Shown one piece after another: positions 8,101 to 61,897 of a stretch of DNA of 64,000 nt (position 1 is its first letter; each line of letters starts with the position of its first letter). The notes below the pieces were generated by a model. The model was not told where the DNA came from and ran no database searches. It saw only the letters and a program-made list of their open reading frames with translations. Where the stretch lies: assembly GCF_032191835.1 (NCBI RefSeq), contig NC_083243.1, forward strand, positions 160,828,001 to 160,892,000, written 5' to 3'. This stretch comes from Heteronotia binoei (lineage: Eukaryota). The position numbers were made by a program, and so were the translations under genes.

Positions 8101-8907
8101 GAAAAATTCTTTAGTTTCTTTTCCTAGGAAAGTCACTGTTTCTTTGTTCTGTAGCAAGTCTTCATTCAATCTCCATCTTCTCAATCTTTTGGACAGTTTT
8201 GTAATCCACATTATTGGGTTATGGTCAGTGCCAATTTTAGGCAAAATCTCTATCTTTCTTGTTATGAGGCCTAAATCTCTGGTTCCCCATAGCATGTCAA
8301 TTCTAGAAAATGTCTTATGTCTTGCAGAAAAAAAGGTATAGTCCCGCACTTCAGGGTTAAACTTTCTCCATATGTCCTCCAAATTTTCCTGTTTTACTAA
8401 TTCAAAAAAAGACTTTGGCAATTTTCCTTCTTTTCCACTATTTTTTTTCCCTCCGGATCTATCCAATGAGTTCTCAACTGTTCCATTAAAATCTCCCATT
8501 AAGAGTATTTGATCGTAGGTCAACTCATCTAGTTGTTGTGTAATGTCTTTAAAAAAAACATCTTTTGCACCATTAGGTGCATATAGTCCCAATAACAGCG
8601 TTTTTTTCCCATTTGATGTTATTTCCACTGCTACAAATCTTCCATCCTTATCTTTAAATACCAATTTTGGCTCCAGGTCTTGTTTAATATAAAAAACTAC
8701 TCCCCTTTTTTTCTGGTCAGCTAACGAAAAAAATTCCCTTCCCAATTGTTTGTTCCATAAAAATTTATAATCCTTTTGTTTAATGTGGACTTCTTGCAAA
8801 CAAATTATATTACAATTTTGCTTTTTAATCCAATGAAAAGTTGCCCTTCTTTTTTGTGGTGAATTTAGTCCATTAACATTCCAAGACAATAGTTTGTAAT
8901 CCATCAT
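5149..8907 (-). CDS. L1 ORF2p (APE endonuclease, reverse transcriptase, CCHC), 1252 aa
   Basis: EN motifs SWNVNGL, LQEVH, GDFN, SRID, TDHNP. RT motifs APGPDG, NYRPISLL, DAEKAFD, GTRQGCPLSP, FADD, KYLG. Zinc knuckle CWKCKKHEGSFYHMWWTC. Confidence 0.97.
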   Translation of the reverse strand: MMDYKLLSWNVNGLNSPQKRRATFHWIKKQNCNIICLQEVHIKQKDYKFLWNKQLGREFFSLADQKKRGVVFYIKQDLEPKLVFKDKDGRFVAVEITSNGKKTLLLGLYAPNGAKDVFFKDITQQLDELTYDQILLMGDFNGTVENSLDRSGGKKNSGKEGKLPKSFFELVKQENLEDIWRKFNPEVRDYTFFSARHKTFSRIDMLWGTRDLGLITRKIEILPKIGTDHNPIMWITKLSKRLRRWRLNEDLLQNKETVTFLGKETKEFFQVNDKEDIDFQTVWDAYKAVMRGLLITLNNKDKREKEKQLLDIQNEIKKKEEELRKRPGKKKILREISILQTQLRHLLNKEVEWNLKRLQQKSFEGANKTGKYLAWQLKKKRENKIINRIVIDERDVVTQEGIKREFFKYYAKLFKGAEVKRKKIDEYLQKIKIEPLTENMRKILNDPIEKIEIEAAINVMKNDKAPGPDGYTAKYFKMFKDELIPKLQKLMNAIRVKGKVPNTWKEAVISLIPKEERDVTNVKNYRPISLLNNDYKIFTRILAERLKQYLINFIKEDQAGFLPKRQIRDNIRTVVNIVEYYERHPEKEVALFFADAEKAFDNLNWDFMFAVMEKMELGESFIRMIKAIYSEQSARLCINADLTDEMKISKGTRQGCPLSPLLFIMTLEILLMQIQEEKDLEGLQIKGFTYKYRAFADDIMFINENPLQVTPLLLMRIQEFGELAGLYINKEKSKILCKNMQKNRQQELQRVTGCEVTSKVKYLGVEITMKNIDLFKNNYEKLWRKIEEDMLKWNKLNLSLLGRIAAVKMNILPRIMYLFQTIPIVKDAKQFDKWRRKISEFVWARRKPRIKMKVLIDAKERGGFQLPDLKLYHEASCLVWLKEWITLLNKKLLMLEGHGKKFGWHAYLYYGKKKMDGLFSHHYIRSSLLNVWIKYKKYGDERRPLWIVPAEVIKLTAKTVKEKQLSYNQLLKIQSGKIELKTAEELNYKYDWFQMQQIKSLMENDIKAEGIRKEQTEMERVLLGDNEKLISKVYKLLLQWATEDEVVKSQMIKWAINVNKEIKMESWEYLWKNSMKLATCHSIKENCFKMMYRWYMTPKKLAKMNNKMPDRCWKCKKHEGSFYHMWWTCERAKMFWQMIQQEISKILGYEFNKEAETFLLGLQMEKFPKEDRTLIWYLLSAARTLYAQLWKQEKIPEKWDWIMKVMSWSEMDKLTRKLRDCDLELFNQEWKKFRRYVEKEWKIKGHWTIFED

Positions 8908-9659
8908 GGTGCAAATTCTTTATTTTCTTCAAAAAATCTCCTCAGTTCTCGGGCATTTGTGATCGTGACTCTCTTCCCCTGAAGTTCAAAGCTCACACCC
9001 TCGGGGATTATCCATCTATACCTTGTGCCATTGTCTTTCAATTTTTCTGTCAACTTTTTATATGTTCTCCTGTCATTTATCACTTCTTTCGGTAGCTCCT
9101 TCATAATTCTCACTCTGCTACCTCTTACTATCAATGATTGTTCAAAGTTTCTCTTCATAATCCTTCCCACCATTTCCTTTGTCATGAATCTTACAACCAC
9201 ATCTCTTGGTAAGTTATTTTTTTTGGCATATAACGAGTTGACTCTATACATGTGATCATACATGCTTTTAGTCTTATCAGGGTCTTCTTCTAAGAATTCT
9301 GCGATTATGTTTGTTATATATCCTTTCAAATCATCATTCTCTTCCTCAGGTACTCCTCTCAAACGTAGCTGATTTTCCATTAATTTGCAGTCGTGAATCG
9401 TCACTTTTTCTTGTACTTTCAGCAAGGTGGTATCATGTATTTTAACTTTCTCCTCCACCTCCTGTACTTTCTTGTCTATTTTCCCAATTTGGTTTTTGAG
9501 GTCATCCACTTCTTTTTTAATCACTGTAGTAAGTTCTTCCTTCAACTCTTCCATCATTTTCTTAACTCCTTTCATAATCCTGGCTTCCATAGCCTCCATT
9601 TGGTCTTGCATTTTTTCTAATGAAAGGGCTCTTGTTCGGGGCTGCCTGGGCTCTGACAT
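8904..9659 (-). CDS. L1 ORF1p (coiled coil + RRM + CTD), 251 aa
   Basis: Heptad-rich N-terminus, then NQLRLRGVPEE (RRM start), PRDVVVRF and a C-terminal RRTYKKL...RYRWIIP segment typical of L1 ORF1p. Confidence 0.9.
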   Translation of the reverse strand: MSEPRQPRTRALSLEKMQDQMEAMEARIMKGVKKMMEELKEELTTVIKKEVDDLKNQIGKIDKKVQEVEEKVKIHDTTLLKVQEKVTIHDCKLMENQLRLRGVPEEENDDLKGYITNIIAEFLEEDPDKTKSMYDHMYRVNSLYAKKNNLPRDVVVRFMTKEMVGRIMKRNFEQSLIVRGSRVRIMKELPKEVINDRRTYKKLTEKLKDNGTRYRWIIPEGVSFELQGKRVTITNARELRRFFEENKEFAP

Positions 9660-27196: not shown

Positions 27197-28361
27197 CTTT
27201 GGAAATAAAAAGCAGCTTTCACTATTTATCCATTTAATCTAGGAATTCCTGTATCTGTACAAACCCAATGTCAACCCAGTGTGCCACAATAGTGAAAAGG
27301 ACAAACTCTATGCTAGGGATTACTAGGAAAGGGATTTAAAATAAAACAGCCAAATTATAATGCCCCTGTGTAGATTTATGATACACCCTGGATCCGCTGC
27401 ATTCACTTTGCACTGCAGCGCAAAGAGAGAAGAGTTAGTTTTCATCATAAGAGCTGAAGCTGAGTTTTTCTGGGTGCATCTGCTTCGGTAGGCTATAACT
27501 CAGACATTCCAAATCCAATCTTTGTCAAACTTGGAGGGCAGGTGGAGGAGAGCCTGCTGAAGGTTCCTGGTGAGTTTTACACCTCCCAAACTAAATGAAC
27601 CATGAATTGGGTCAGAAGTCAAACAAATCACAAAACAAACCACCATTTTCCCCACTGCCTGTCCACAGTCTCAAATATTGTGTTACCTAGTAATCCTATA
27701 ATGCTAATTGTAATCTTTTGAGATCTCTGCCAGCATTGTTTAAAATTCTAATTTGTGTGTCAGTACAGTCTTTGTTTCTCTACTTGTGGGTGGGTTAAAC
27801 CCACAATTTTATCGTGTGAGATTACAGAGTGAAATACATCTGACTCTATTGACTTGATTTTTTAAAAAAATCTGGACTGTAAAGTCAACTTTGGAACTAG
27901 CTACATGACTGGGCTGTTTCAACTGATAATTTTTAAGTCAACATTTTTTATGTTTGCTAATGCTATCTCTTCAGAACATGGTTAAAACTGGAACACTAAT
28001 AAATCTCTGCTGTTTGCACAGCTTGGCGAGTAATCAACATGTTCAGAACAAAAATAAAGCTTTAGGACTAGTATTTAAATACTTTCCTCCTCAAGCTTTT
28101 GGACATGAGCACACTTGATGGATAAATTCTATTTGTTAAGACTAAAAAGAAAACAGTCCAGATATTCAACCTACCTAAGAACTTCCCTGTTTATAAAGAA
28201 TAAGGAAGTGCTACATACATCATTTCCCCACCTCAGTACTATATGCCATTTCCTCTTAACTTTATTACTTTGTCACACAGATATACCCAAAATTCTGGTT
28301 TCATCCTGCAACATACAGGTACTGCCTGAACAAATAACAGATTCCCATCATTTACCACAAG

Positions 28362-31300
28362 AAAACGAAGTTACACTGACCTGTAACTATTATTCATCCA
28401 TTACTTTCTGTGCACACACAAGGACCACATGAATGGTCAGATAGGTCTTTATAGCTAAAAGCCTCTGGGGGCACTGCATCCCAGAGCCAGAATCTTGTTC
28501 CCATCTAGGGACCACATGCTCCTGCATAGCAGCATACCCCTACCCTCAATACCTCTAGTGCCACTGAAGCCAGAGCATGCAGTGGAGCAGGAGAGAATGT
28601 ATGTGTGCCTGCACAGAAGATATTCAATGAACAACAGTTACAGGTAAGTGCAACTTTGTTTTCAACATTGATCTTTTGTACAGTCCCACATGAGGATTCT
28701 AGCAAGCTACTCACAGGTGGTTGGGCATGCTCTTCTCACTTGAAAAGTGAATGAAGACCTGCCTTGCCTACTTGAGCGTTATGTCTCACCTGCAGATTCA
28801 AAATGTAGTGATGTACAAATGTGTCTGCAGTTCTCCCTCAAAGGCACTTCATCCAGGAAAGCTGTGGAGAAGCCATAGCCCTAGTGCAGGCGTCCCCAAC
28901 CACCAGGTCATGGACTGGTACTGGACTGTGGCCTGCTAGCAACCGGGCCGCGGAGCAAGGCAGAGAGCAGCCCCGGACTAAAGAGGTTGCAGGGGAGGCA
29001 ACCTCAGAGTGAGGCCACACCGCCTCTTTCAACCACCCAGGTCCTGGACCGGCAGAAGGGGCAGCACTGCTGTGGCCTTAGCCTTCCCCTCATTTATAGA
29101 CTTCCACCTATCAACTGATTGGCAGGAGTCTTTAAATGGGAGGGGGAGGCAGAAACAGCCCAAGTCTCCCCCCATTTAGAGACCCCCATAGGGGACAGGG
29201 ATGTGGCATGGGCGGGGGCAGCCTGGGGTGGCAAAACCCCCAGTGCCGCCTCCCCCACTGGTCCCTGGAAAGATTGTCTTCCATGAAACCGGTCCCTGAT
29301 GCCAAAAAGGTTGGGGGCCAATGCCCTAGTGGAATGGGCATGATTGTTCTATAGGCATGGCAATCTGGCCCTATCATAACACTCCCTAATGGTCCTGACA
29401 ATCCACTGGGACAGGGTCTGAGATGGTGTTCTCCTACTCTCAGGGCCACTAAAACAAATGGCTCTATTCCTGCAAAACTTCAGGGTTCTGAGGTAAAATA
29501 ATAATGCCCTCCTAACAAAGGATACAATAAACACTCATTCACAGAGCTTGGTGCAGGAAAAAATATGGGCAAAACAATATCTTGGGATAAGCGGAACATA
29601 GAAACTACCTAGGAATACCTTCAGAAAGAGAGGATATCTATCTGAAGAGCTGCTGGCTCACCCACTCACCTGGCTGAGGTAACAGCTACTAGGAAACACA
29701 CCTTCATAGAAAGTTCTGCCAAGGAACAGGTAGCAAGCGATTCAAAAGGCTTGAGCATTAACTGTGCTAACATAACAGATAAAAGACCACTGGGGCATTA
29801 AAGGATCCCAGGGCAGGCAGAGATTGCCTAACCCTTTAAGAAATCTCTTAGACAAAGGATGGGAGAAAACGGATCCTTCCTCAGTTCGTCTGTGATAGCA
29901 AGAGATAGCAGCCAGGTGAACCTTCAAAGAAGAAAACACCAGGCCCTCAGTTTTCAGGTATAAATATAATAAATAATCAAATATGACTTGCAACAGGGCA
30001 CTACCTGGCAACACATCCTCACTACATCAGAGGGAGAACAGCCTCCACTTGTATGTATAGGATTTCGTAGTGTTAAGTTTGTGTGACTGCAGGAGGACAT
30101 CACTAACTTCCTTAGAAAATATTAGGTCTCTGTTTGAAGCCTCCGAGCCATCAGGTTAATGCGGTTCAGACTGCGATGAAGCACCTGGTTGATGCTGATT
30201 ATATCTAGTCATTTTGGTAGAGAAAGAAACTGGCTCTGGGAGATCTCCATAAGGACTGGCAACCATATCTGATGAGGCCAAAAGGGTGATACCGGGATCA
30301 TATTTGATCTCTCCCTACTGTCTATTCCCCTGATAGGGAGTGGGAGTGGAGGGAATGCGTAAACAAACAGGGCTTGCTGTCAACATAGCTGAAACACATC
30401 CCTTGGGGAACCAATTCTTACTCTTGCTTGAGAACATAATCTTACAGCTGTCTTGTTTTCTCATGTCACATAAAGACTGACATCCAGCACCCCCAGAGGA
30501 TAAAAAACAGCTCCAGGTAAGTGGCCTTTATGGACCACTCGTGGGAGTGTGTTCCAGCTTCCCAGGGATGTGGATAGTTTGACTCAAAACATTGAGCTTC
30601 ACCACTATGTCCCATGTAAAAATAGCTTTCTGATATAGACCTCTGGACCCTGTACTTCCCTGCTTTTAAAAATAAAACATTGTACATTGTAACTGTATTT
30701 TCTGTCTGGACAAGAATGGATCAGTTTCAACGATATCTGAAAAACAACTAAGGTCATAATGCACTGCTTGCAATTCTGAAATGTTAACATGCAGCAGCTT
30801 CTCATCTTCTAACCAAGTACCCCTAGCTGACAATTCATCATAGTGGGTGCCCCAACTGAAGAGCAAAGAATCCATAGTAAGAATGCTACCCCATGTTCAG
30901 AAACTTGAAAGGAAATCCCTTTAAAATAAATTATCCATGGAAGACTACCCCAATAAAGAATGTATGACAGGTCCGGGAATAGAGAATCTGGGCCATGAGG
31001 CATTAACCCCAGCTCTATAACAAGACAGAAACCAGATCTGCTGGGATCACATATATAACCTAGCCATATGTAGGACTGTGATGGTAGAAGCCATATATCC
31101 CAAAAGCCACAGAATTTTCCAAACCAATTTGAACTATCTCACCAAGACAAAAATAGCCTGTACCTTTTAGTGAGATAGGAAACTTTTCCACACTAGGGAA
31201 TCCAGCATAGCTCCGACAACCTGTACCCTTTGAGATGGAACTAAATGTGATTTATCCCATTTTACCAGGAGTCCTAGTCCTTGACAGGCCTCCAGGACAA

Positions 31301-32335
31301 AAGTGCAATAATTCAACAATCGGTCCTTGGAATTTGCCACCATTAACCAGTCATATATATGGAATATATAGCAACCCCACATTCAGAGGTAAGCAATAAC
31401 CAGGGTTAATTAGAAAATACTCTGGGTACAGTGGTGAAACCAAAGAGTAGGATTCTGTAGTTCCCCACATGAAAAATGCAAGAACCTATGATGTCGAGGG
31501 TGGATTGAAACATGATTTGAAGGCATCCTTCAAATCAATAGCAAGGAACCAACAATTAAATTGTAATAATTGAAACATGAAGAAAAGTGTTTAATTTTCT
31601 GAGGTCTAAAATGGATCTAACTCACCCATCTTTCTTATCTACTTGGAATATGAGAGAAGAAACCCTCTGATGCCTGAGACACCATAACCTCCTGTATGGT
31701 ACCCTTGTCAATTAGGGAGGCCAAAGTCTGGGCAACACCCAAATCTGTTTGGTTAGATCCCCTTAAAGGTAAACAGCAATGGGGAATATACTCAAATTCT
31801 AATCTGTAACCAAATTAACTATGAACAAAACCCACTCATTGGAAGTAATAGTCTCCCACGCCGTAGAAAACTGAGCTGGCCTGTCCTGAACTTTACAGGG
31901 GCTGGCAATTAACATAGTCAGAAGGATGACTTCTGGGATGAAGATGCTTCTTTGGAGGAGGGCGGTTAATGCTTCAACCTAGACCAGTTGGAACCCTTAT
32001 GCCTATGGTTACCCTGCTGTGGGGTAAATGGCTTAAGGGGAGGATACTGAGACCCCAAGGGACTAGAAAAGCAGCAGTCCCTTTGATATGAGTGTCAGGG
32101 CTGTCTCACAAAGGATCTCCATTTAAATTGGGATGTGGACAAATGAGAGACTCCTAGGGTCAGTTGTATGTTTGTTCTTTATCACGGAGAGCACCTCATC
32201 TGCTTTGGAAGAGAAGAGCATGAAACCTTCAAAAAGTAAACCCTCAACTTTAAGTCTGATCTCCAAAGGCAAGGCTGTTGATCTTAACCACACATGACAC
32301 CTGGGTACGATGGAGCTCATCATGGCCCATGCAGC
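28362..32335 (-). mobile_element. Old, decayed DIRS1-type tyrosine-recombinase retrotransposon in TALDO1 intron 1
   Basis: Minus-strand fragments in order: gag (CHVWLRS..LPLEIRLKVEGL.FEG), RT (IYDWLMVA...KSHLVPSQ), RNase H (WGTH...HVNISELQAV), YR (SSLKVHLAAIS; VRRALLFYL; HSTRA; TFVHHY). ICR at 28601-28692 is complementary to the 3' terminus at 28362-28420. Confidence 0.85.
28887..29323. mobile_element. hAT MITE inserted in the HSTRA motif of the old DIRS recombinase
   Basis: TIR-like ends caggcgtccccaacc / ggttgggggccaatg and an exact 8-bp TSD ccctagtg at 28879-28886 and 29324-29331. Confidence 0.85.
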
Positions 32336-37989: not shown

Positions 37990-38520
37990 AACCATAGAAT
38001 CAGAGTTGGAAGGGACCTTTAGGCTCATCTAGTCCAACCCCCTGCGCAATGCAGGACCTTCACAAATACCTTCCCCTAAGTTCACAGAATCAGCATTGCT
38101 GTCAGATGGCCATGTGGCCTCTGTTTAAGAACCTCCAAAGAAGGAGAGCTCACCACCTCCTGAGGAAGCCTGTTCCACTCAGAAACTGCTCTGTCAGGAA
38201 GTTCTTCTTAATGTTTAGTCAAAAACTCTTGATTCAATTTCAACCCTTTGGTCTAACCCTTTGGAGCAACAGAAAACAACTCACCATCCTCTATTATGAC
38301 AGTCCTTCAAGTACTTTAAGATGGTTATCTTATCTCTCAGTTGTCTCCTCTCCAGGCTAAACATACCCAGCTCTTTCAACCTTTCCTCATAGGACTTGGT
38401 GTCTGGACCCTTCACCATTTTCGTTGCCCTCCTCTGGACACATTCTAGCTTGTCTATATCCTTGTTAATTTGTGGTGCCCAAAACTGAACACAATACTCT
38501 AGGTGAGGCCTAACCAGAGC
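37990..38520 (-). mobile_element. CR1 3' fragment (third subfamily)
   Basis: catagaatcagagttggaagggacc...ctagtccaacccc 3' end, plus reverse ORF2 remnants (ccagagggcaacgaaaatggtgaagggtc; tatgaggaaaggttgaaagagctggg). A short + copy lies at 42650-42722. Confidence 0.85.
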
Positions 38521-41745: not shown

Positions 41746-44470
41746 TGATCCAGTGTGGATTTCCCATGGCAAAAACCCGCCCTTTAGCAAAGAAGAGGAT
41801 AAAATGGGGTGTAGCCTGAGATTGGAAATAAGGGCAAGTTCAAGACTTAAGGCCTCCTTTCTTAATCCCCCCTCCTGCTCACACACATGGCTTAAGCAAA
41901 GTAGCTTTTTATTATAACAGAGTAAATACAGTATTGCACACAAAGTATGGTACTTTCCACCCACCCTCATACTACTTTTCCTTCCCAAACCAAAGATCCA
42001 GTAGTCAGTGTCCCAGAAGTGCTTCTTTCTTGATGAAGCTGGTCCAGCCAGACCCTCAGAAGCAGGCCTCCAGTGGGAAGGAAAGTTCTCAGGGCCTCTC
42101 TCCTCACCATCCAAGAGAAGAAGTCAGATCCAGTTCATAGGCAGGTGGTCTGGGGGCTAACTTCCTCCAGAAGAAATGATTTCCAAAAAAAGGAGGGCCC
42201 TGCACCAGACAAAACCCTTCCTCAGCTGAGGTCTCAGCACTCCAGTCCTTGGAGAGACAAGACTAGGCCCTTTGCTCCTCCCACTACCCAGCTTTGTTTT
42301 CTTCCAGTCACTTCTACACACACTCCTCCCAATATGCAAATTAAACAATTTCATTGCTCTCCCCAACAGGATATATCCCCAAAGGGGATCAGGATCCGGC
42401 TTTTCTGGTGTTTCTAGAAGCCTTGCACATGACAGTTGCAAGTATAGGAGGACAGTTGATCTCAGATATAGAAATATGTGGATATACTGGCTATGTCCAA
42501 GGAACAGATACTGGTTCTTCAGGTTAAAGTGTTTTTTGTTTTTTTTACAAACACTACTATGCAAAGATGAATAAAAACAACTGATAGGTTTTGAAAAAGT
42601 AGCAATAACCAGTGAAAATAATATATATACTGGGGAGGAATTTGTGAAGCTCCTGCATTGTGCAGGGGGTTGGAATAGATTACCCTGGAGGCCCCTTCCA
42701 ACTCTGATTACGATTCTAAGATATATAATTTTTATTGGATGCTGATAGTAAATGGCAGAAAAAAAATTGTAAAACCCTGGACAAAAGATCTGAAAGTCAC
42801 AATAAATCTAGAGATTTGGACATCAGTGTTAAGTGGTTTACATTTTACAATAAACCTTAATAGTGGTACAATGATAGCCATGAATTTTAATGTTTTAATG
42901 TTAATATTTAATATTAATTTGTTTTATGTTGTTTTTACTTTATTGGTTTTAATGTAAGTCACCCTGAGACCCTTTGGATGAGTGGTGACTAACGAGTCTA
43001 ATAAATAAATAACCCCAAAGAGTTTTAAGTGGCATCTATATTATAATATTTGATTCTCACAAAAACTAAATTGGGAGACAGTTACTTGTCCAAAGAGCTT
43101 TGGGTTTCATATTCCCAGTCAGCTCAGCACCCCAGCCATAATACCACTGTGGGGCTCTAGAAACCAGTGGAGTCACTGAAGTCAGTAAAAATATGTGGTT
43201 TCAGGACTGAGCATTACCATTACTATTATAAAGATTTACCAGAGAATGCTACTGATGGTGTGACTTAACAGGAAGTCCCTTGATTGAGTTACGTCTTTTG
43301 AATTGTCATGCATGAAACACATACCACTTGCATTTTTCTTCAGATACCACTATGCCCAGACCAAAGAGCAATGTGTCTCTAGGCATGCATCCATGCAGAA
43401 CATCTAATTTTGATCAGGGTTGTAGATGTTCTTCCAGAAACAACTACTTGGATGACAGAAACGGCATAGCATTTGTATAAACTACTTTTTCAATATCCAC
43501 AGATTTTTATTTAGCACAAAGAAAGGCATAGTATAAATGTTTTCATAAATAAAATTAATAAATAAACCTCTAAGCTGAAAAAGTAGAAGTAATAAACTTG
43601 TGTAGTTACTAGGGGAGTGCTCTCTGCTGACAAAGTAGGCCATCTGGTTCACTTTTAGTTACTCAGTTTAGAACATACATGAGGGAAGTCTCATGGTTAA
43701 CAGTTCCCAAATCATGGGTCCCGGCTCCAACCACTAGGTAAAGGGGAGGGTCAGCTTGGTTCCCATGGAGAAAATGGATGCTTTGGAGGGTGGACTCTAT
43801 AGCATTGTGCCCCACTGAGCTTCCTGTTCTCCCCAGGCTCCAACCCCAAGCTCAACATAACTTGAGTTTACTAACCTCAATCTGGCAACTCTACCCCCAC
43901 CATCCCTTGCTAGGAGAGACCTGGCAACCCTCCTCCCAGTCCATTCCCAGCCACATCCCTCCTCCCAGTCCACTTTCTCCTAATCAGCCCAACTTGACTG
44001 GCAATGGCTCACTTGCAGGCCACATTTCTGACATCCAGTGCCCCATGCCTGCACTAGAACTTTTTGCTTCTTTGTGTGACTGGGGCTGACTGTTGGGGTG
44101 GGGTGGCGCTTGACTTTGGCCATACCTTTCTAGGACAACTGCCTGCTGGGACCCAGGTGATTTGGCAATGAGCAATGCAGAGCCTCTCTAAGCCATTCCA
44201 TCACAGAGCTATTTCGTGTATGCCAGCCTACCATGCATCTTTTTTTACCACCATATCACTTGTCTCAGTCCACACCACTAATAAATGCCAACACATGTGG
44301 CAATAGCTTGCAGCTGCCTGTTGCAGTGGTAGCCAATCGACCTGGTATAAATCACTGTTTCTAAAATGATTTCACATATCGAATAACTACCACATGGGGA
44401 GTTTCAGGTAGCTGTACTGTGAGAAACTACCTAGTTATTTCCATATGGCAATTATCTTCAAACTGAAATG

Positions 44471-45040
44471 TTCTCCCTCTGAGTCGGAGGCCATCTTGGG
44501 TGTTTCCCACTATCGTGTCAGGGAGGCAGGAAATAGAATCTTTCTTCTTCCTCTTCCTGTGGCACTGGAACACCAATCTCCTCAGTTGTGTTTTCAGAAG
44601 ATAGCGATGTCCCACCCAACGCTCTAGGAGCTCCCAAGATGGCCTCTGGCTCAGGAGAATGACCATTGATACTTACTGTGAGGGTTCCTTCTCCTCTGAG
44701 TACAGGAGGACATCTTGCCCACCTCTGTACATAGCTCGTGTTCTTCTTGAACTTTTTCTGCCTGACTCCTTTCCTTTTGAATATACAGTTATGTCTGTTC
44801 AGAATTATTTCTGTTACCTTGTTATTATCACTGTTGTGGTTGTTTCTGAGTAAGGTTGATAGTTTAAACTGCTTTCTTGGAGTACTCGAACTGAGGAGAT
44901 GGGTGTTCCAGTGCCACAGGAAGAGGAAGAAGAAAGATTCTATTTCCTGCCTCCCTGACACGATAGTGGGAAACACCCAAGATGGCCTCCTGTACTCAGA
45001 GGAGAAGGACCCCTCATGGTAAGTACCAATGGTCGTTTTC
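44471..45040 (+). mobile_element. Miniature non-autonomous DIRS-type element (ITR-ICR-ITR, no ORFs)
   Basis: 102-bp inverted repeats 44486-44587 / 44889-44990 (1 mismatch). Segment 44633-44721 is the reverse complement of the left terminus joined to the reverse complement of the right terminal extension. Confidence 0.8.
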
Positions 45041-48000
45041 ACTAATGCATATTGAGCATACTAATTAATTCTGCCCTGGTGAGAAACATGCATTATGAAT
45101 GTGGCAGATTGATTTAACTGTCTTGTAAGAATTAGTGAAAGTTATATATTACTGAAATCTAGCACTGGGAATAGGAGTCTATTTTTAATTTACAAATTAG
45201 AACAGCTTTCAAATAAACCAAAGTGATGTGTAAATATCTTTTAATTTTGAAACCAGCTTGCTATCCCTGTTTACAATAGCATGTTTACAATACATACATA
45301 CAGTTCAGCATAATTATATCAAGCCATGTTTGACTGAACAAATTAGGCAAGATCCTAACCCTGTTAAAATATATGTAAATAATCGATTTGATATGTTGTG
45401 AGCACTCCCAACTAAAACAAGAAGAGCATGGGTTCTCAAGTGCAGCCACTGCAGAGCTTTCGGTGTGGCCACCATTACACTGGTTCATTGACTTTTAGGG
45501 GATAGAACTAATATGTGGCTGCATTTTTATTAGAGGTAAGTGTCACCAAATAGGACTGAAAGGTTTTAATTCACTAATAGTGCAGTCTTAAATTTAGTTG
45601 CGCTGTTCTACATCCATTGAAGTAAATGAGTTTAGACGGGGTTAACTCTGCATAGGATTGCTCTGTGAATATGTTCAGTATATATCTGCATAGAATTTGA
45701 ATAGTCCACATCCATTAATGTTAGCCAGTGCTGGAGCACACGAGAAGGAGAATAAAGCAGTTCTTTATTCATTGCATTTCTTGTCTTGGAGCTCACAGTT
45801 GTGCTTTGTTTCTACGTTGTTGCACTTTCATTGCTACCAGCTCCATGTAAGAAACAATCTGTTTGCTTTTTCTGTTCTAAAATCTGGTCCAACATTAAAC
45901 AAAAACATACTTGAATATTCTGACTGTAAACTTGCCAGCTTCATATATACTATATACTTTATGCTAGCTCTGATTTCTTAGATTGTAATTAATTATCTCT
46001 GTGCAGCTACTTTTCACAAGTAAAATATAATGTGAAAACATAATTTTCATTTAGTTATAACTTCATGGATTTTTGGTCATGAACTTTGTCTATCTATTTA
46101 TGTACATATAATCTAAATCCACTGTGGCTAATGTACAAATAACAGTAAGCAAAGAAACATTGAGCAGTGATGTGTGTACTTCTTAAAGGCTTGGTCTTGC
46201 CTAAGTCCAGGCATATACAGAGCAAAGTGTTTTAGGGAGAAACAACAGTGTTATGGGATTGCTGCCGCCATTTCATTCTGTATGGATGCAGATCTTTATA
46301 GGCCTTAATTTTAGAAGAAATTCATTTTCATACATCCAAAACTTGAATAACATGGCATTTAACAATCATATTTGTTCAGATGGATTTATCAGGCTTCTAT
46401 TTCCAGTATCTGAGAACATTCCAATATCTGAGAACATTAAAACAAGGATATATGCAGTTCTCACTGACACCAACTTCAGCTATAGTGATACATAATCAAC
46501 ATGCATACTTCACATTTGCTGAGCTAAGCAGAGTTCCCTGGGGAGTATGTCCAGAATGGAAATAAGTGGACTTGCAGTAAAACAATGTAATTTGGACAAT
46601 ACAGCTCAGTTTCTGAAAGCTGGTATTGCTTGTGGGATTTGGCTTATAGTTTATCATCAGAGGGAGACAAAATTCGAGTCCAGGAGCACCGTAGAGACCA
46701 ATCCATTTTTCTTATACAGAGTTGGTAGTAATGAAAGTAATAAAGATTTTGTTGTTCTCTGTTATTGGACCCATTTTTTCTTCTTCTACAGACTAACATG
46801 CTGTCCACCTGAAACTATCTTCACAGAGGGAGACAACTAGGTGTGCACCAGGTGATAGCATAGAGTGGCACTTGACTCTTAATTTGATGACCAAGGATTC
46901 CACTACTATCAGATCCAAAATTTCAAGTAACACAATGCTTTCTGTTATGATTATTAAAATCTAATTTGGAATTCTTTTATATGTTCTTATTTCTGAGTGA
47001 GCAAGGCATGGGCAACATGCATGCTTTCAAACTTTCCCTCCCCTCGCTCAATCACATGGGACACTTTAACCCCCCCCCTCTAAGTTTTAATTTGTTACAA
47101 TATTCCCTGAACCCAAAAGACTTGTCTCTGAGGCCTTATAGTGTATATCCATGAATTAAAGTGAAATATATTACTGAATGAACTCAGAATGGTTGGACTT
47201 AAATTTCACATTCTGACTCACATTTTGACTAGTTCAGTCTTGCATTGAGAAGTACTGTGGCTTTTATATTAGGGATGAATTCCAAAACAAACTATTACAC
47301 AGCTAATGAGGTCCCTGGCAGTGCCATCCTAAGCAGAATTATATTCTTTGAAGGTCACTCAATTCACTACACTTAGAAGGGTGTACTTCTACTTAGGATG
47401 GTCCTGTTAGAGAATTTGGGACAGGGGATTGTTTTTGAATCAGTGAGAAATTAGTTTCTTACACACACTGCTAAGGGCCATTTGTGATATAATATTTCAT
47501 ACTTCTAAGTATGATAATTTGAATATTTATCTGTCTGAATTAATCTAGGGAAACATGGAAATTCCTTGCAATCACTTCATTGTCAGAAATGGAGGCACTG
47601 GTGATACAGTCTTGAGGGCATGGATATGAAAATAATCTATTTGCTTGGCCAAGAGCTCTTACACAGTACATCAGAATATATTTACATGTGCTGTAATCAC
47701 ATCCAGCTCACATTTTTCTTTTTTCCTGGTGATAGTGCTGTTACTGGTTCTGTCAAGAATGGACCCAGCTGGATGAACTCTCATTATCCTCAGTGCATGA
47801 GGGCTTTCCTGAGGACTTTTGATAACACATAAAAGCAACACACACAGTTGGGGCAGGATAACCAAATTCCAAATTAATTTGCTTGCAAGTTGATCATTAC
47901 CTCATCCTATATTTACTCTTCTTATATGTTGCAAAAGTGAACCCCAAAGTGGGCAGCATGTTATGTACTAAAAAGTATACCAGAAGAGGTGAGATCATCT

Positions 48001-53650: not shown

Positions 53651-54062
53651 TTACCATCTTAAAACTTTATAATCTTCATCGTGGCCTCCGTGCAGTCCCA
53701 CACATAAGTCTTGCTGCAGGCAATGGATCCATACCTCGGAGTCTCCAATAGCTCGCCTAGAGTGTTTTTTGGCGCGCTTTATGCTTGCCCTGGGGAGCAG
53801 GCATCGACTGCGCATGCCTGGAGCGAGCGGGAGGCACCATTCCCACTCAGTTTCTTCCTTTCTGCCACCCAGACAACACCTACCTTGCTGCGTTCCTCTC
53901 TCCTCAGCTCGTCTTTTCCTGTTTGGTATTGTATTCCTCCTTTTTCTCTTATCTCCTTTCTTCTATTATTTTTCGTCCTTATAAATTTTTTTTTAAAAAA
54001 AGCCCTTGTTGCTGCGCTTTTCTTTCCCTGTTTTTCTCCCTCCCCTCACTTGTCCGGAGGGT

Positions 54063-56375
54063 ATGGAAGGGAAAATTACTTTCAAAAAGTGTCGGAGGTG
54101 TGGATCTAAAATCCCTACTTCAGACGGACATTCGTACTGTTTTTCTGCTTGGGTGAAGCTCATTGGGTAGATACTTGCCCTCATTGCGCCAACTTCGGTA
54201 AACAGGTGCGAAAAAATCAAGCGGCCAGACTTCAAAGTTTCCAGCTCGAAAAATCTCTCTGGGCTATGCCCAGCTCTGATTTGCCGCCTCCCCCACACCG
54301 AACTGGAGATTCGGCTGCGTCGGCTGCTCCTCAACTCCATAAAAAGCATAAGTCTGACAAGAGACCATCCAAGCACTCTGACACCGGCCACAAGGTTTCG
54401 AAGAAGTCTCGCCATACCGATCCGTTGGCCTCGGCTCCGAAAAAATCTCGCGATCCGACAAGGTCGACTCTGACGACTTCCCCGAGGGCTACCACTTTGA
54501 CAACTATAGCAACATCGATGGCATCAGTTTCCACACACTCGGCTCCGATCCAACCTCTTGTTCCACCAGAGCTTTCGGCGCCCTCCGACGTCATCTCCGG
54601 CATGCTTCATCTCACTCCTCACTCCCCAGCTGCAGTCGAGGTTATACCAGTCCGATCTTGTTCGCCCTCGGTCCACAGCATGGTGCCGTTCAACATCCTC
54701 GAATCCGACCCCCATTTGGATCCGACTTTCTCTCAGGAGCATCCCCCGTCTTTGCTACAGGCTGGATCCTTTCGAGACATCGGAATCTCTCCTCTCTACA
54801 GAGAGTCGTCGACACAGGTTTCCACCCAACATGTCCGATCTCGCTCACCGGTTCGACGTCGTGATTTCCGCTCACGCTCTCCAGTCTACCGTGAGTACCA
54901 GGACTATTACCAGAGGGGTCGATATGAATATTCTTCACTCTCCAGATCGCCATCTTCCAGACACCGCTGGGTTTACCATCGCTACTCCTGTTCCCCCTCG
55001 GATGAAGGTTTCCGTCGCTCTCATTACCGTGAATTCGAGGTCGCGTCCCACAGCCGTGATGTATTAACACCTCAAATCTGTGACTTTGAATCTCCTCGGT
55101 ACCGTGAGTTTTCTTGAACCCGAGACCCGGAGTATCTCTCTTCTCGAGACCGTGAAGTCCTTTGAGTCCATGAACCTCCTCGGTACCGAGAATCTTTTAT
55201 ACCCTGCACAGCTTCTGCCACCATATCTGCTGCTCCGGCCATGACTTCTATATCGACCATGACTTCGACTGCCTTACAAGTACAGTCTAAACCTTCCAAG
55301 GAAGGTGCATCCACATCTGCACCTACCAAGCCTCTGATTTCTCCCGCAACCGAGGAATCCCAATCCGAAGGGGACAGCTCCAGCAATTCTGACTCCGAAG
55401 ATCCTCCTGGCTCTCCTGCTTCAGATTCCACACATCCAGCCCGTCTTTCTCCATCAGATGGTTTGAAGGCCTACCTTAATCTGTTTACTACCATGGCTGA
55501 AGCCTTGAATGTTACTCTTCCTTCCGACTCACACAAGGTTTCTGACATAGTCCACGATTTGGTTCAGGCGGATTTTCCAGCGGGGTCACCCCTACCTATG
55601 TTGCCAGTGCACTTGGAGGGGCTGCGTGAGGCCTGGGACAAACCTGCATCGATTCGCTTTGACTCCCTGTACAGAGTACACGCTCCTGATTCTAAATTTT
55701 TAGCCTTTCATTCTGCTCCAAACTCCATCATCGTGCGCTCAGCGACTAAAGCCAAACCATCCAGACATCCTACTCCTCCTGATCGTGATGGCCGGAAGTT
55801 GGACACCTTGGCTCGCAAGATTTACAATTTTGCCTCTACTAATTCCAAACTTAATGATTACCTGGCTTATTTTTCTGCATATACATTTAATCTCGCCAAC
55901 CAATTTATTCCTCTCATTCCTTCTCTGCCTGAAACTTCTCAGAGAGTCGCATCCAAAATAGTCTCTGAGCTCTCACGAGTTTCTAAACAGCAGATTAACA
56001 CCATCAGACATGCCGTTTTCTGCTCATCTAGAGTTTTTGCTTCATTGGTCCACGAACCTGCAACCCGACATCAAACAAAAAATCGAAGACCTACCTTTTG
56101 ATGGCCTTGGCCTCTTTCATGCATCCACTGATGAAGTCCTCACTTCGGTAGATGATGGCCGCAAGAGGGTGAAGCGCCTTGGAGTCTCTCAGCCAGCTTC
56201 TCAGCAGTTCAATCGACCCAAGCCCTGGAGACCATCTTTTCAGAGGCGTCAACACTCTCCTAAGCAATCCGATTACTGGAAGAGGAAACCCCCCCAGCAA
56301 AAACAATCCTTCCAACAGAGGCCACACTCTCAGCAGACAAAGAAGTCTTCTCAGCCAGCCAAGCAGTCTTTTTGA
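54063..56375 (+). pseudogene. DIRS gag-like ORF1 (frameshifted)
   Basis: MEGKITFKKCRRCGSKIPTSDGHSYC/CLGEAHWVDTCPHC zinc-binding N-terminus, S/R/P-rich middle, then PPDRDGRKLDTLARK and IEDLPFDG. Broken by a frameshift near 54145, a stop at 55117 and a further frameshift near 56020. Confidence 0.85.
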
Positions 56376-56468
56376 CTCCCCTCTGCATCTCATCCAACAG
56401 CTGAATCCCTGTTATCAAACACGTCTTTTCCCGTTCTACCCAACCTGGAGCTCAATCACCATGGACTC

Positions 56469-58250
56469 TTGGGTACTCACCATAATCCGCCCAGGTTACG
56501 CAATCGAGCTCGTTTTGCCACCTCACCACCACTACTTTACTGTTACTCCACCATCCCCTCATCTCAAACAAGAGATTCTGGACTTGCTCCAAAAAATGCC
56601 ATAGAACCTGTTCCTCCTCACCATCAGGGGACAGGTTTCTACTCACAATATTTCCTGGTGCCCAAGATGGACGGGGGCAAGCGACCCATTCTGGATCTCA
56701 GGAGATTAAACAAGCGGATAGTCTACAAGAAATTCAGAATGATCTCCGTCCAATCCATCCTTCCCCTAATTCCGCAGGATTCCTGGATGGCATCCCTGGA
56801 TTTCCAGGACACTTATTTCCATGTGACCATCAGACCTCAGCACCACAAATATCTTCGCTTTGCCATGGGACAACATCACTTCCAGTATCGATCCCTCCCG
56901 TTCAGGCTATCCACCGCCCCGAGAGTGTTTACGAAATGCATGGCAGTGGTCGCAGCTGCCCTGCGTCTTCGCAACATTCCAGTGTTCCTGCACATAGACG
57001 ACTGGTTACTCATCGCTCCCACAGCACATCAACTGGTGAAGAATCTCAAAACAGCACTCTCTCTTCTCGCCTCCCTGGCCCTGTGTGTGAATGCTACCAA
57101 ATCTCACCTCACCCCAACTCAGGACCTACAATTTATAGGTGCTCGTCTCTGCACATCTCATCTCGTTTTTCTTCCCAGGGATCGTGCCCACACCATTCTG
57201 TCCCTGGCCCAGGAGGTCATACGTACCACAACGCAATCTGCAATCACCATCCAACGTCTTCTGTGCCTCATGGCCGCAACAACCTCGGTTCTTCGATTCG
57301 CAAGACTGCGCATGCAGCCTCTCCAGCTTTGGTTTGTCCGTGCCTACCACCCACACATAGAACCACAGAATACCGTTCTCACTGTACCTCAGAGGGTTCG
57401 GCTCTCCCTTGTCTGGTGGACAGTACCAGACATTTTACTTTGCAGAATGCCCTTCGTTCTTCCTCTTCCGTCTGTCATCGTGACTACAGATGCCTCCAAG
57501 TGGAGATGGGGAGCCCACTTAGAGGACAAGACTGCCAGGAGTCTGTGGACTGTGCTCGAGAGGGCTATGCACATAAACTGCCTAGAACTCAGCCGTTCAC
57601 AGGGCTCTTCAATCGTTCCTTCCGTCTGTAATCAACCAACATGTCCAGATCACAACCGACAATATGGCCACAGTTTTCTATGTGAACAAGCAGGGCGGTA
57701 CCAGATCTCTCTGTCTGTGCCGCATAGACATACTTTTTTGGGAATGGTGCGTCAAAAACAGCATCTACCTGACTGACATTCACCTTCCAGGGAGAGAAAA
57801 TGTCTTTGCCGATTCCCTCAGCAGGATTCGCATAGACGACCACGAATGGTCCCTCAATCCACGCTACTTGCATTGCGTCTTTGCATGATTCGGGACTCCA
57901 AAAGTAGATGTTTTTGCTACGAAGGACAACTCGAAATGCCCTCTCTTTTATACCAGGAGAGGCAACGATGCTTTCCTCCACAGCTGGAGGGGTCCTCTTC
58001 ATTATCTTTTTCCACCAACCCCTCTGATTACCCGATCTCTACTCAAAATTGTTCGGGACAGTACAGACTGCATACTGATAGCGCCATGGTGGCCACGGCA
58101 ACCGTGGTTCACGAGACTCCTTCAAATGCCCCATCACACTTATCGCTGCCTCCTCCTGGCAGACGACCTCCTCACCCAGAATCACGGCCAGGTATGGCAC
58201 CACAACCCCCAAATTCTAGGGCTTACAGAATGGAGAATTCGGCCACATTT
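56469..58250 (+). pseudogene. DIRS pol: RT, RNase H and methyltransferase-like domain (disrupted)
   Basis: FYSQYFLVPKMDGGKRPILDL, LPFRLSTAPRVFTK, HIDDWL (Y to H), TTDASKWRWGAH, HINCLEL, then VDVFAT...YLFPP...IAPWWPRQPWF. Confidence 0.9.
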
Positions 58251-59240
58251 TTACCACCAAGAGTAGCGGAAGTTATCCTGAATGCCAAAAAACCTTCTAC
58301 CAGATGCTCATACCAGTGCAAGTGGAAGCGCTTCTGCTCCTTCGCATCCTCTCAACAACTTGATCCACAGTCTGTACCTCTCCCTTAAGTCCTGGAATAC
58401 CTGCTGTCTCTACAGGTGTCGGGTCTCAGTTATTCTTCTTTAAAGGTTCACCTTTCAGCCATTTCTGCTTTCCATGAGCCTATTGACGGTCAAACCGTTT
58501 TCTCTCATAGACTGTCCGAATCATTCCTTAAGCGCATGTTGCACCTTCACCCTCCTATCAAACCGATTGTGCCAGTTTGGAGTATGTCGTTAGTTCTTGC
58601 ACAACTTATGAAACTCCCGTTTGAACCCTTGGCCACTGTGGACCTTAATCTTCTCTCTTGGAAGACTGCCTTGTTGGTTGCTCTTACTTCTGGCAAGAGG
58701 GCCAGTGACTTGTGTGCCTTCTGCTCTGACCCACCTTATGCAGTTTTTCATAGGAACAAGGTGGTCTTGAGAGCGGATCCTGCTTTCTTACCCAAGGTTG
58801 TATCGAAATTTCATCTTTCAACTTCTACTTCGTTGCCCACGTTTTTTCCTAATCCTAAGGACTCTGGACAAAGAGCTCTACACACCCTCAACATCAGAAG
58901 AGCTTTGTCTTTTTACCTCTCTAGTACACAACCGTTCCGAAAGGACCCTAACTTATTTGTGGCCTATGGCAATCATCAAAGAGGACACAAAATTTCTACC
59001 CAGAGACTCTCTAAGTGGGTATCCATTGCAATCCGGTTGTGTTATGAAGTTGCTAAGCAACCTTTACCTGAAGGCCTTAAGGCTCACTCGACTAGAGCAG
59101 TCTCGACCTCCTCGGCCTTCCTGGAGGGCGTCTCCTTAGAGGACGTCTGTGCTGCTGCATCATGGTCCTCGCCGTCCATGTTCGTCTCACACTGCCTTGG
59201 ACGTTCGTGCCAGACGGGACGCCTCCTTCAGCCAAGCGGT
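58230..59240 (+). pseudogene. DIRS tyrosine recombinase (disrupted)
   Basis: KPSTRCSYQCKWKRF, SSLKVHLSAIS, SGKRASDL, HTLNIRRAL, HSTRA. In-frame TAA at 58386-58388. The expected catalytic HY reads HC (cactgc) followed by a frameshift. Confidence 0.9.
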
Positions 59241-61897
59241 CCTCAGGTCCATCTTCCACTGAAATCATTCCAGGTGAGTGCATGCATACATTGTAAGTAT
59301 GAAGATGTTTTTTTCTTGCCAGCACCCACCTTCCTTTTGACTTTTAGCTTGCTAGTCACCCATGTGTGGGACTGCACAGAGACCACGATGAAGATAAACA
59401 GGTTGCTTACCGGTAACTGATGATCTTTGAGTAGTCATCTGTGCAGTCACACACGCCCACCCTGCCTTCCCCTCTGCTGGCTTTTTCTGCCTTGGTTTTC
59501 ACCTTTGTAGACTGTCAGTAGCGGCTGGAAGAAACTGAGTGGGAATGGCGTCTCCCGCTCGCTCCAGGCTTGCGCAGTCGATGTCTGCTCCCCAGGGCGA
59601 GCGGAAAGTGCGCCAAAAAATGCTCTAGGTGAGCTGTTGGAGACTCCGAGGAATGGATCCGTTGCCTGCGGCAAGACCCATGTGTGTGACTGCACAGATG
59701 ACCACTCGAAGATCATCAGTTACAGGTAAGCAACCTGTTTTTCTTCTCTTTATAGAAAGTACAATCTTTTCTAATTCAAGAAGATGGCCATTTAACTGGT
59801 AAACAGACATATATAAGTTTATTTCAAAAAAGGAGCTTGGTCTCCACACCTATATGTGACTGTCTACAACAGTCCTGTCTGGCTTTCTCAGGAGCCTGCT
59901 CTTTCAGATCCCACTAACCATCTCAGTACTTCTGTAAATTCTTAACTTCACCTTATGTACAGGGGAGATAGGCTCTTCTTGTTCTTGGTGAAAGAACTCT
60001 CAAGAAGTAACTATAGCCTATTATACATGGGTGCTTTCCTTTGCTTTCACTGTGCATCCATTGGGTATTCTTTGTCATTCTGCATTGATTTCCCTCCCTT
60101 TAGTGCTCAGTTCACTTTCCGGTCACTGTTTCCCTACATTCTCTGAGAGTGTTTTTGTGCTGATTTTACCCTTGTTTCACTTCCAAGCTGAAGGTAATGA
60201 AAAAGCATACAGATTCCCTTGAATTTCCCCCCAACCTTTCGCCACCCCTTGAAGGTCACTCCTTGCCTATATCAAGGTCATTCTACCCACTCTGCACCTT
60301 CTACCATCCTCCTCCCTTTCTTGGTGTGCAAGCTTCATTTTTCCTCAGTTTTAATTTTTAAAAATAATTTTTTTACAAGTGGCATGGTTCTAGTTATATG
60401 AGAAAATTGCCAGTCTCGGATTGCAGAATAAAAAAAATTAAAACAATGGAGGGAGGGGGAGTTTAAAAGGAGCTGCACGAGGTTTAGTTCCCTGTTGGTA
60501 TTGATTTGAAAAGGGGATCAGAGAGAAGGCAAATATCAGTGTCCTCAGTACAAAAAAATGAGGATTTCAGTGCTGCATGCAAACAAAATAAAGTGGGGGA
60601 GGGGGGATCATCGGTACAGAATGATATTGACATGAGTTGTAAAGAGAGAGAGAGAGAGAGAGAGAGACATTGGCATGGGAAGACTAAAGCTTTGAAAATA
60701 TTTTTCCCTTTACTTCTTTAGTGAACAAAGCTGGGGAGTGGGGCCATTTCAGCAGTCTCTGGAAGCCTAACATTAAAATGGAAGCTGAGCTACATGGACC
60801 TTCTGTGAATTTAAGAATAATTTGGGATTGATCTGTTTGAAGGACAGTGCAAACCTCTCAGAACAGGCTCTAAAAACTGCCAAGATCATGACCAGTTTGC
60901 AGGATCAAATTAGAGAATCACAAAAAAGAAAACCCTGCAAATTTTTATAGAAAGAGCAGGAAATTAGTGTTGTATAGTAGTAGTTGTATAGTACTTTTGC
61001 ATAGTTGCATAGTAACACTAATTTCCTGCTCTTCCCCCCAATTTTTTCACTGTAGTGGCACAAGATTAATAAAGCTCGCCAGAGGTTCTGCCAGAGGACT
61101 CCTCCCTCATGCAAATTGCAGCCCTGGGCAAAGCATGGTGAAGTTACAGCCAACTTTACACATGCACACACATACACATTGACAATGATCACAGCTTCCT
61201 ATTCCAGTGTTAGTTGGTTTTGCCATGCATTCTATACACTCAATATGTTTTCCCATATTATGAGATGGTGTGACTCTTTTCCATTTTTCACACTGGCGAA
61301 TAACACAGCAGAGAATCCCTAGTGCATAGAAAATGGGGCTTTACAGCTGCTTGTCAGTTTCAGAAAAAGTCTGGTCAGTTTCAATAGTGAGTTTTCCCTC
61401 TTTGCCTGCCTTCCTTTCTGTCCCCTTTCATTCAATGATCTAATGCTAAAATGCATTCACAAAACCTGAACCATAAGGATTTAAATGGAAGACACTTGTT
61501 GGATACTATGGCACAGTTATGATGGGGTAATTGTGTAAATTGCAAAAAAAAAAAACTTTGGATGCCACCTCCCGCATATCACAAGTAATGTCCTACCCTG
61601 ATTTAGAAAGGTGCTCTTTTAAAATTGTAGCTGCAGGATAAATACACCGGAGGAAAAAGAATGGTGCATAAGGCGGGCACAGAATCTGAAGTCAAGATTT
61701 GAAAATCTGCAGTAAGATGTGCATGTATAATGGGCCTATGACTCGGGAGAAAGTGTGGTTTGGATAACAAAATTTATCCCATACCCAGTTTATCAATAAA
61801 AACTTGTCCCACTGCCTCAAGTCATGTCATATACAAACAGAAAAACAGAATAAGAAAAGAGAACAGTGTGAGGAGGAGAAAGACAACAGCAACTTAC

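Follow-up and report, generated by a model that had tools for sequence, protein, structure and literature searches.

The replication of DIRS retrotransposons is still mostly a model. According to the model of Cappello, the DIRS RNA is synthesized without most of both terminal repeats, and one repeat is restored from the other. The tips anneal to the ICR and are completed by DNA synthesis; ligation then joins the ends, and the recombinase inserts the product without forming a TSD (PMC7192593). In its standard version, this model predicts that a newborn copy has exactly matching arms and an ICR that pairs exactly with the termini (PMC7192593). In Dictyostelium, the ICR was shown by experiment to be essential and the RT to work in trans on a truncated element, while the observed DIRS-1 cDNA was mostly linear and single-stranded and the full cycle of the truncated element was not demonstrated (PMC7192593). 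An initial annotation of the locus described here regarded end templating and circle formation by the ICR as established; the essential role of the ICR indeed stands by experiment, but the templating and the circle formation belong to the model (PMC7192593). The ITR/ICR layout with a "circular junction" corresponds to the published definition of the DIRS1-type ICR (PMC8969392, PMC3266345), and in AcDIRS1/2 of Anolis it consists of a divergent ITR of 26 nt, a conserved ITR of 136-140 nt, an rE (right extension) of 26-28 nt, and an ICR of 39-40 + 58-60 nt (PMC3266345). Non-autonomous relatives in the DIRS order are already known, namely TOC1 (PMC9940879) and SIRE/VIPER (PMC6681497). In the literature searched, Repbase aside, no description of a miniature DIRS1-type element with the ITR-ICR-ITR arrangement was found. 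Deletion derivatives of retrotransposons are commonplace.

In the 64-kb window, that is, the whole stretch of DNA analysed, a miniature element of ~570 bp was located at 44471-45040, in which sequence reading and repeat detection revealed every known DIRS cis part and no genes (Table 1). The left ITR (44471-44587, 117 nt) and the right ITR (118 nt) are inverted copies of each other, and their gapped alignment extends over 119 columns with 95.8% identity (E = 2e-49, blastn against the window). The arms are separated by a 301-bp spacer and their sole mismatch is located at 44575 (A vs C). The left end reads TTCTCC from 44471, and this left tip pairs with the tip of the right ITR only via three indels, which affect the outer 15-20 nt, while its complementarity to lICR (the left half of the ICR) includes two mismatches and a 3-nt indel. 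At the other end, rE carries a 5′ splice-site-like motif, ATG|GTAAGT, at 45018-45024 and terminates with CGTTTTC, where the final TTTTC (45036-45040) may still belong to rE or may instead be the crossover core contributed by the target. Rereading of 44471-44500 and 45018-45040 thus bore out the left terminus, the right end, and the 102-bp ITRs with one mismatch as they had been annotated initially. A further motif, (C)CCAAGATGGCCTC, occurs three times (44488-44500, 44633-44646, and 44976-44989), that is, once in each ITR tip and once in the ICR, and its core may resemble a YY1-type site.

Table 1. Coordinates of the parts of the miniature element and of the two coding DIRS elements in the window
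Feature	Position	Strand	Remarks
Left tip, "divergent" part of left ITR	44471..44485	+	Starts with TTCTC, one copy of the junction core
Conserved arm, left ITR	44486..44587	+	102 nt, 101/102 complementary to 44889-44990
Linker, left ITR to ICR	44588..44632	+	45 bp; stands in place of ~5.5 kb gag/pol/recombinase of coding DIRS
lICR, left half of ICR	44633..44659	+	Reverse complement of left tip
rICR, right half of ICR	44655..44717	+	Reverse complement of right ITR tip + rE
Post-ICR spacer	44717..44888	+	GCCCACC (44717-44723) and CTTTTTCTGCCT (44752-44763)
Right ITR	44889..45006	+	Conserved arm 44889-44990, tip 44991-45006
Right extension (rE)	45007..45040	+	31-34 nt; complementary only to rICR, not to left ITR
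DIRS A arms	53669-53858 and 59527-59716		86%
DIRS A ICR	59362-59454		Complementary to both ends, 86% and 94%
DIRS C recombinase	30155-29298	-	In pieces
DIRS C RT	31514-30771	-	
DIRS C ICR and right end	ICR near 28604-28690; right end 28361	-	

The ICR had been described as an 89-bp segment (44633-44721) composed of the fused reverse complements of both ends. The fusion was confirmed, but the complementarity stops at 44717, which leaves a bipartite ICR of 85 nt (44633-44717) representing the reverse complement of the right-end/left-end junction. In blastn, 44633-44654 proved to be the reverse complement of 44479-44500 (22 nt, 91%, E = 0.011) and 44655-44717 that of 44978-45040 (63 nt, 56/63, 89%, E = 7e-18). 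The two halves abut with a 5-nt overlap, GAGAA (44655-44659), which is the circle-junction core and complements the five bases at either end of the element, TTCTC at its start exactly and TTTTC at its end with one mismatch, while rICR also includes CTTAC, the mirror of the splice-donor-like motif. Since the ICR reads ...GGAGAA|TGACC..., it predicts the junction GGTC(A)-TTCTCC, whereas the genome has GGTCG and then TTTTC. The ICR sits 171 bp upstream of the right ITR, and the linker and the post-ICR spacer together amount to ~216 bp. The inverted terminal repeats and the bipartite ICR near the right ITR agree with those of DIRS1-like elements.

Reading of the sequence around the miniature element revealed no flanking TSD, and its bounds, TTCTC (44471) and TTTTC (45036), would fit a crossover core in the single copy examined. 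As the ICR of DIRS C, one of the two coding elements described below, includes the complement of GTTTTC, position 45040 is a reasonable right end for the miniature element, with a 5-nt overlap. Around the other coding element, DIRS A, the flanks (53660-53680 and 59735-59750) look like the circle junction of DIRS A itself: the sequence on the left, ACTTTATA, is similar to the right end CCTGTTT, and that on the right, TTCTTCTC, to the left start ATCTTCAT. These flanks suggest that the DIRS recombinase may pick junction-like targets.

The ORFs across the miniature element are short (34-174 aa) and span the repeats. Five of them had no exact match in a collection of 15 billion proteins, where two that begin with GTG were possibly queried with V for M, and the longest one, of 174 aa, had no relatives in the protein search. 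Scanning of 44200-45300 for tRNAs and Rfam families returned nothing relevant either. The statement of the initial annotation that ~45 bp replaces the ORFs between the left ITR and the ICR agrees with the linker delimited here. Since it encodes no recognisable protein, the miniature element is a non-autonomous derivative and not an autonomous DIRS1-like member.

Two coding DIRS elements are present in the same window. DIRS A is a 6-kb coding element (53672-59740) with the same layout as the miniature element, and the complementarity of its ICR to both ends upholds the view that the two ICRs follow the same logic. Its RT ORF matches Pfam RVT_1, while its recombinase ORF, without a Pfam match, has DIRS-type relatives in reptiles and amphibians. 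The search with the recombinase gave 19 matches with ≤53% identity from other reptiles and amphibians, and the best identity of 53% indicates that the DIRS proteins of this genome itself are absent from the protein collection. A metagenome scan using the DIRS A recombinase as a single sequence found nothing, and the scan using the recombinase alignment found one 1.7-kb contig without ends. DIRS C, a second coding DIRS related to DIRS A, lies at ~28361-31514 on the minus strand; its left ITR was looked for and not found, thus DIRS C is probably 5′-truncated or decayed. The inverted pair 37998/42709 was considered as a third large DIRS and rejected, because it looks like two SINE-like repeats (37998-38075 and 42632-42709, 78 nt, 4.5 kb apart, 87%). 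The window also contains an apparently intact L1-type LINE (5149-9659, minus strand), in which ORF2 (1252 aa) has endonuclease and RT domains and ORF1 (251 aa), with a weak L1 RBD-like match, overlaps the start of ORF2 by 4 nt.

Comparison of the ITR, the linker, and the right end of the miniature element with DIRS A and DIRS C detected no significant similarity, only short positional motifs, consistent with the earlier observation that its ITRs match neither large element. The lack of significant overall similarity means that the miniature element comes from another lineage. The positional motifs are nevertheless arranged alike. GCCCACC directly follows the ICR in both the miniature element and DIRS A (59455-59461), as had been noticed initially, and the 12-mer CTTTTTCTGCCT is found in both of them, in the same order, 26-35 nt beyond GCCCACC (at 59481 in DIRS A); a shared 12-mer was attained in 3/2000 and 2/500 shuffles. 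At the right end, GGT(A/C)AG is located 19-23 nt before the terminal GTTTTC/TTTTTC in the miniature element, in DIRS A (59725), and in DIRS C (28381), and it is mirrored as CTTAC(C) in each of the three ICRs. Judged from these three elements, the right-end motif appears to be conserved across otherwise dissimilar families, which raises the question of whether it may serve as a U1 site or as a self-priming hairpin. The splice-site-like sequence lies within a small hairpin at all three right ends (45018-45040, 59725-59743, and 28381-28361).

The initial annotation had anticipated that the RNA of the miniature element would fold into a long hairpin, and the predicted structure is in fact one long hairpin of -315 kcal/mol vs -169 +/- 7 in shuffles (z = -19.9), while the ICR forms its own inner hairpin within the fold of the single-stranded element. 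Long, perfect-looking hairpins are known from many MITEs, and the element might accordingly be thought to have no DIRS origin at all and to represent a DNA transposon of the fold-back or hairpin type, an inverted repeat that arose by chance, or an artefact of the assembly. We consider this highly improbable. MITEs and fold-back elements are characterised by TIRs and a TSD and lack an internal region that pairs with both ends, whereas the miniature element has a bipartite ICR complementary to both ends in the DIRS order, at the E-values given above, and no TSD beyond the TTCTC/TTTTC core. Its right extension is one-sided, the splice-donor-like GGTAAG and the GTTTTC end are common to both coding DIRS, and GCCCACC and the 12-mer are placed as in DIRS A. 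A fold-back artefact is also contradicted by the arms, which are below 100% identity, and by the indels in the tips.

The explanation that we put first, and to which we assign an even chance, is that the miniature element may be a low-copy or one-off, non-autonomous, internally deleted DIRS1-type derivative belonging to a family distinct from DIRS A and DIRS C. Its origin would then be a deletion, by which a tyrosine-recombinase retrotransposon parent lost ~5 kb between the left ITR and the ICR but kept both ITRs, rE, the bipartite ICR spelling the circle junction, and the post-ICR motifs. This could have happened by a template jump of the RT during retrotransposition of the parent, followed by integration as a miniature element, or by a later deletion in place. 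For any renewed movement, Gag, RT/RNase H, and the recombinase would have to be borrowed from a coding element; since the cis parts are kept and the RT can act in trans, we infer that the element is a plausible substrate for trans-mobilisation. No second copy was found by blastn within the 64-kb window and the flanks are unique, which speaks for the low-copy or one-off reading. On the other hand, the loss of the interior with every cis part spared resembles a product of selection for mobility, as in TRIM, LARD, and MITE elements, and a single random deletion is improbable as the source of such a shape (by a rough estimate, with two breakpoints placed at random, a few in 10,000). The arms are 99% identical, which fits a young insertion and counts against this reading as well.

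The same traits enter the case for an amplified MITE/TRIM-like family of mini-DIRS elements, whose members would be transcribed from the left ITR, reverse-transcribed, circularised via the ICR, and integrated by the proteins of an autonomous DIRS with the same termini. The miniature element retained all the cis parts and almost nothing else, 101 of the 102 positions are identical in its arms, and its post-ICR motifs are conserved; moreover, the Dictyostelium DIRS-1 RT works in trans on a truncated element and endogenous proteins integrate transformed cDNA (PMC7192593). However, the 64 kb searched contained neither a second copy nor an autonomous partner, as neither DIRS A nor DIRS C shares the ITRs of the miniature element, and the ICR and the termini are ~11% apart, whereas identity is predicted for a fresh copy. 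An amplified family is a serious possibility, although we would not expect it.

The ICR differs from the termini by 9/85 mismatches plus a 3-nt indel (~89% match), while the arms differ only by 1/102 (Fisher p = 0.006). Of the ICR/terminus differences, 7/9 are transitions and three or four affect CpG sites, one of these dinucleotides having decayed on both partners. DIRS A gives similar values for the two measures (arms 86%, ICR 86-94%). The exact ICR/terminus complementarity expected of young DIRS copies was therefore not seen in the miniature element, so this copy would either not be freshly rebuilt on its own ICR or have had its arms homogenised later. Three possible scenarios may account for this gap. 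The miniature element may be about as old as DIRS A, its close arms having been homogenised by intramolecular template switching or gene conversion; it may be young, with tips last restored on another ICR, for example, that of a helper; or the ICR may be a splint that tolerates mismatches. In none of these cases is the element a fresh product of its own ICR, which tempers the initial claim that it represents a complete replication scaffold.

The ICR/terminus pairs have diverged (9/85 plus the indel, chiefly by transitions, several of them at CpG) to a degree similar to that in the decayed DIRS A, and only the arms are near-identical. This would be in line with an old full-length DIRS that was deleted once in place, whose arms were later homogenised by quasi-palindrome correction and which never moved as a miniature element. 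Such a history overlaps with one of the two routes allowed by our first explanation. It would take a neat deletion and later, as a separate event, a presumed homogenisation of the arms, in each of which the CpG is still intact. Taken together, we regard it as improbable.

The second scenario leads to the boldest version of the amplified, trans-mobilised family, in which the tips would be restored on the ICR of a helper. This version would account for the contrast between arms that are 99% alike and an own ICR that is ~11% off, and it predicts a coding DIRS with an ICR exactly complementary to 44471-44500 and 44978-45040. Membership of the element in such a family seems rather unlikely to us. 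If an amplified, trans-mobilised family did exist, it would prove from nature that every DIRS protein works in trans and that the left ITR, ~45 nt, the ICR, ~170 nt, and the right ITR/rE suffice for the full cycle.

That the arms match better than the ICR and the termini is relevant to the question of whether the ICR serves as a template for the ends or just as a splint. A natural 0.57-kb element composed of ITRs, ICR, rE, and ~216 bp would define the minimal cis set if it were mobile, and the initial claim about minimal cis requirements likewise depends on a demonstration of mobility. The element would also offer a compact donor for helper/donor assays in vertebrate DIRS. If it is a one-off deletion product, as the first explanation allows, the element is a decayed copy of the usual kind that happens to look tidy.

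Among the known short retroelements, SIRE, the short VIPER derivative of Trypanosoma cruzi (PMC6681497), is similar to the miniature element in that it is a ~0.43-kb element in which a short linker of its own joins the 5′ end of a tyrosine-recombinase retroelement to the 3′ end, and both pose the same question, namely, whether they are mobile in trans or only remnants. VIPER differs in having split direct repeats and no ICR (PMC6681497), and SIRE is highly repeated, whereas the miniature element was seen once in the 64 kb searched. TRIM and LARD elements likewise kept the terminal repeats and cis signals and lost the coding part, but they have direct LTRs, PBS/PPT, and depend on an integrase. 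TOC1, in turn, is presumably a ~5.7-kb element of the split-direct-repeat type and not an ITR/ICR element. What it has in common with the miniature element is that this Chlamydomonas reinhardtii member of the DIRS order is non-coding and dependent on a coding relative (PMC9940879). The cis signals are also kept in trDIRS-1 of the helper/donor system (Malicki et al., 2020, PMC7192593), the RNA of which was reverse-transcribed in trans; trDIRS-1 was, however, engineered, retained a part of the ORFs, and its full cycle could not be scored (PMC7192593). Compared with the squamate DIRS1-like elements AcDIRS1 and AcDIRS2 (Piednoel et al., 2011, PMC3266345), the miniature element is ~0.57 kb instead of ~6 kb, has no gag, RT/RNase H/MT, or recombinase, and its ICR matches the termini only at ~89%. 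In all other respects compared, the architecture is the same: a divergent ITR tip followed by a strictly complementary inner part, an extension on the right side only, two abutting/overlapping ICRs just upstream of the right ITR, and, as far as the single copy examined shows, no TSD (PMC3266345). The sizes of the parts are similar as well, with a tip of ~15-20 nt, a conserved ITR of 102 nt, an rE of 31-34 nt, and an ICR of 27 + 58-63 nt in the miniature element.
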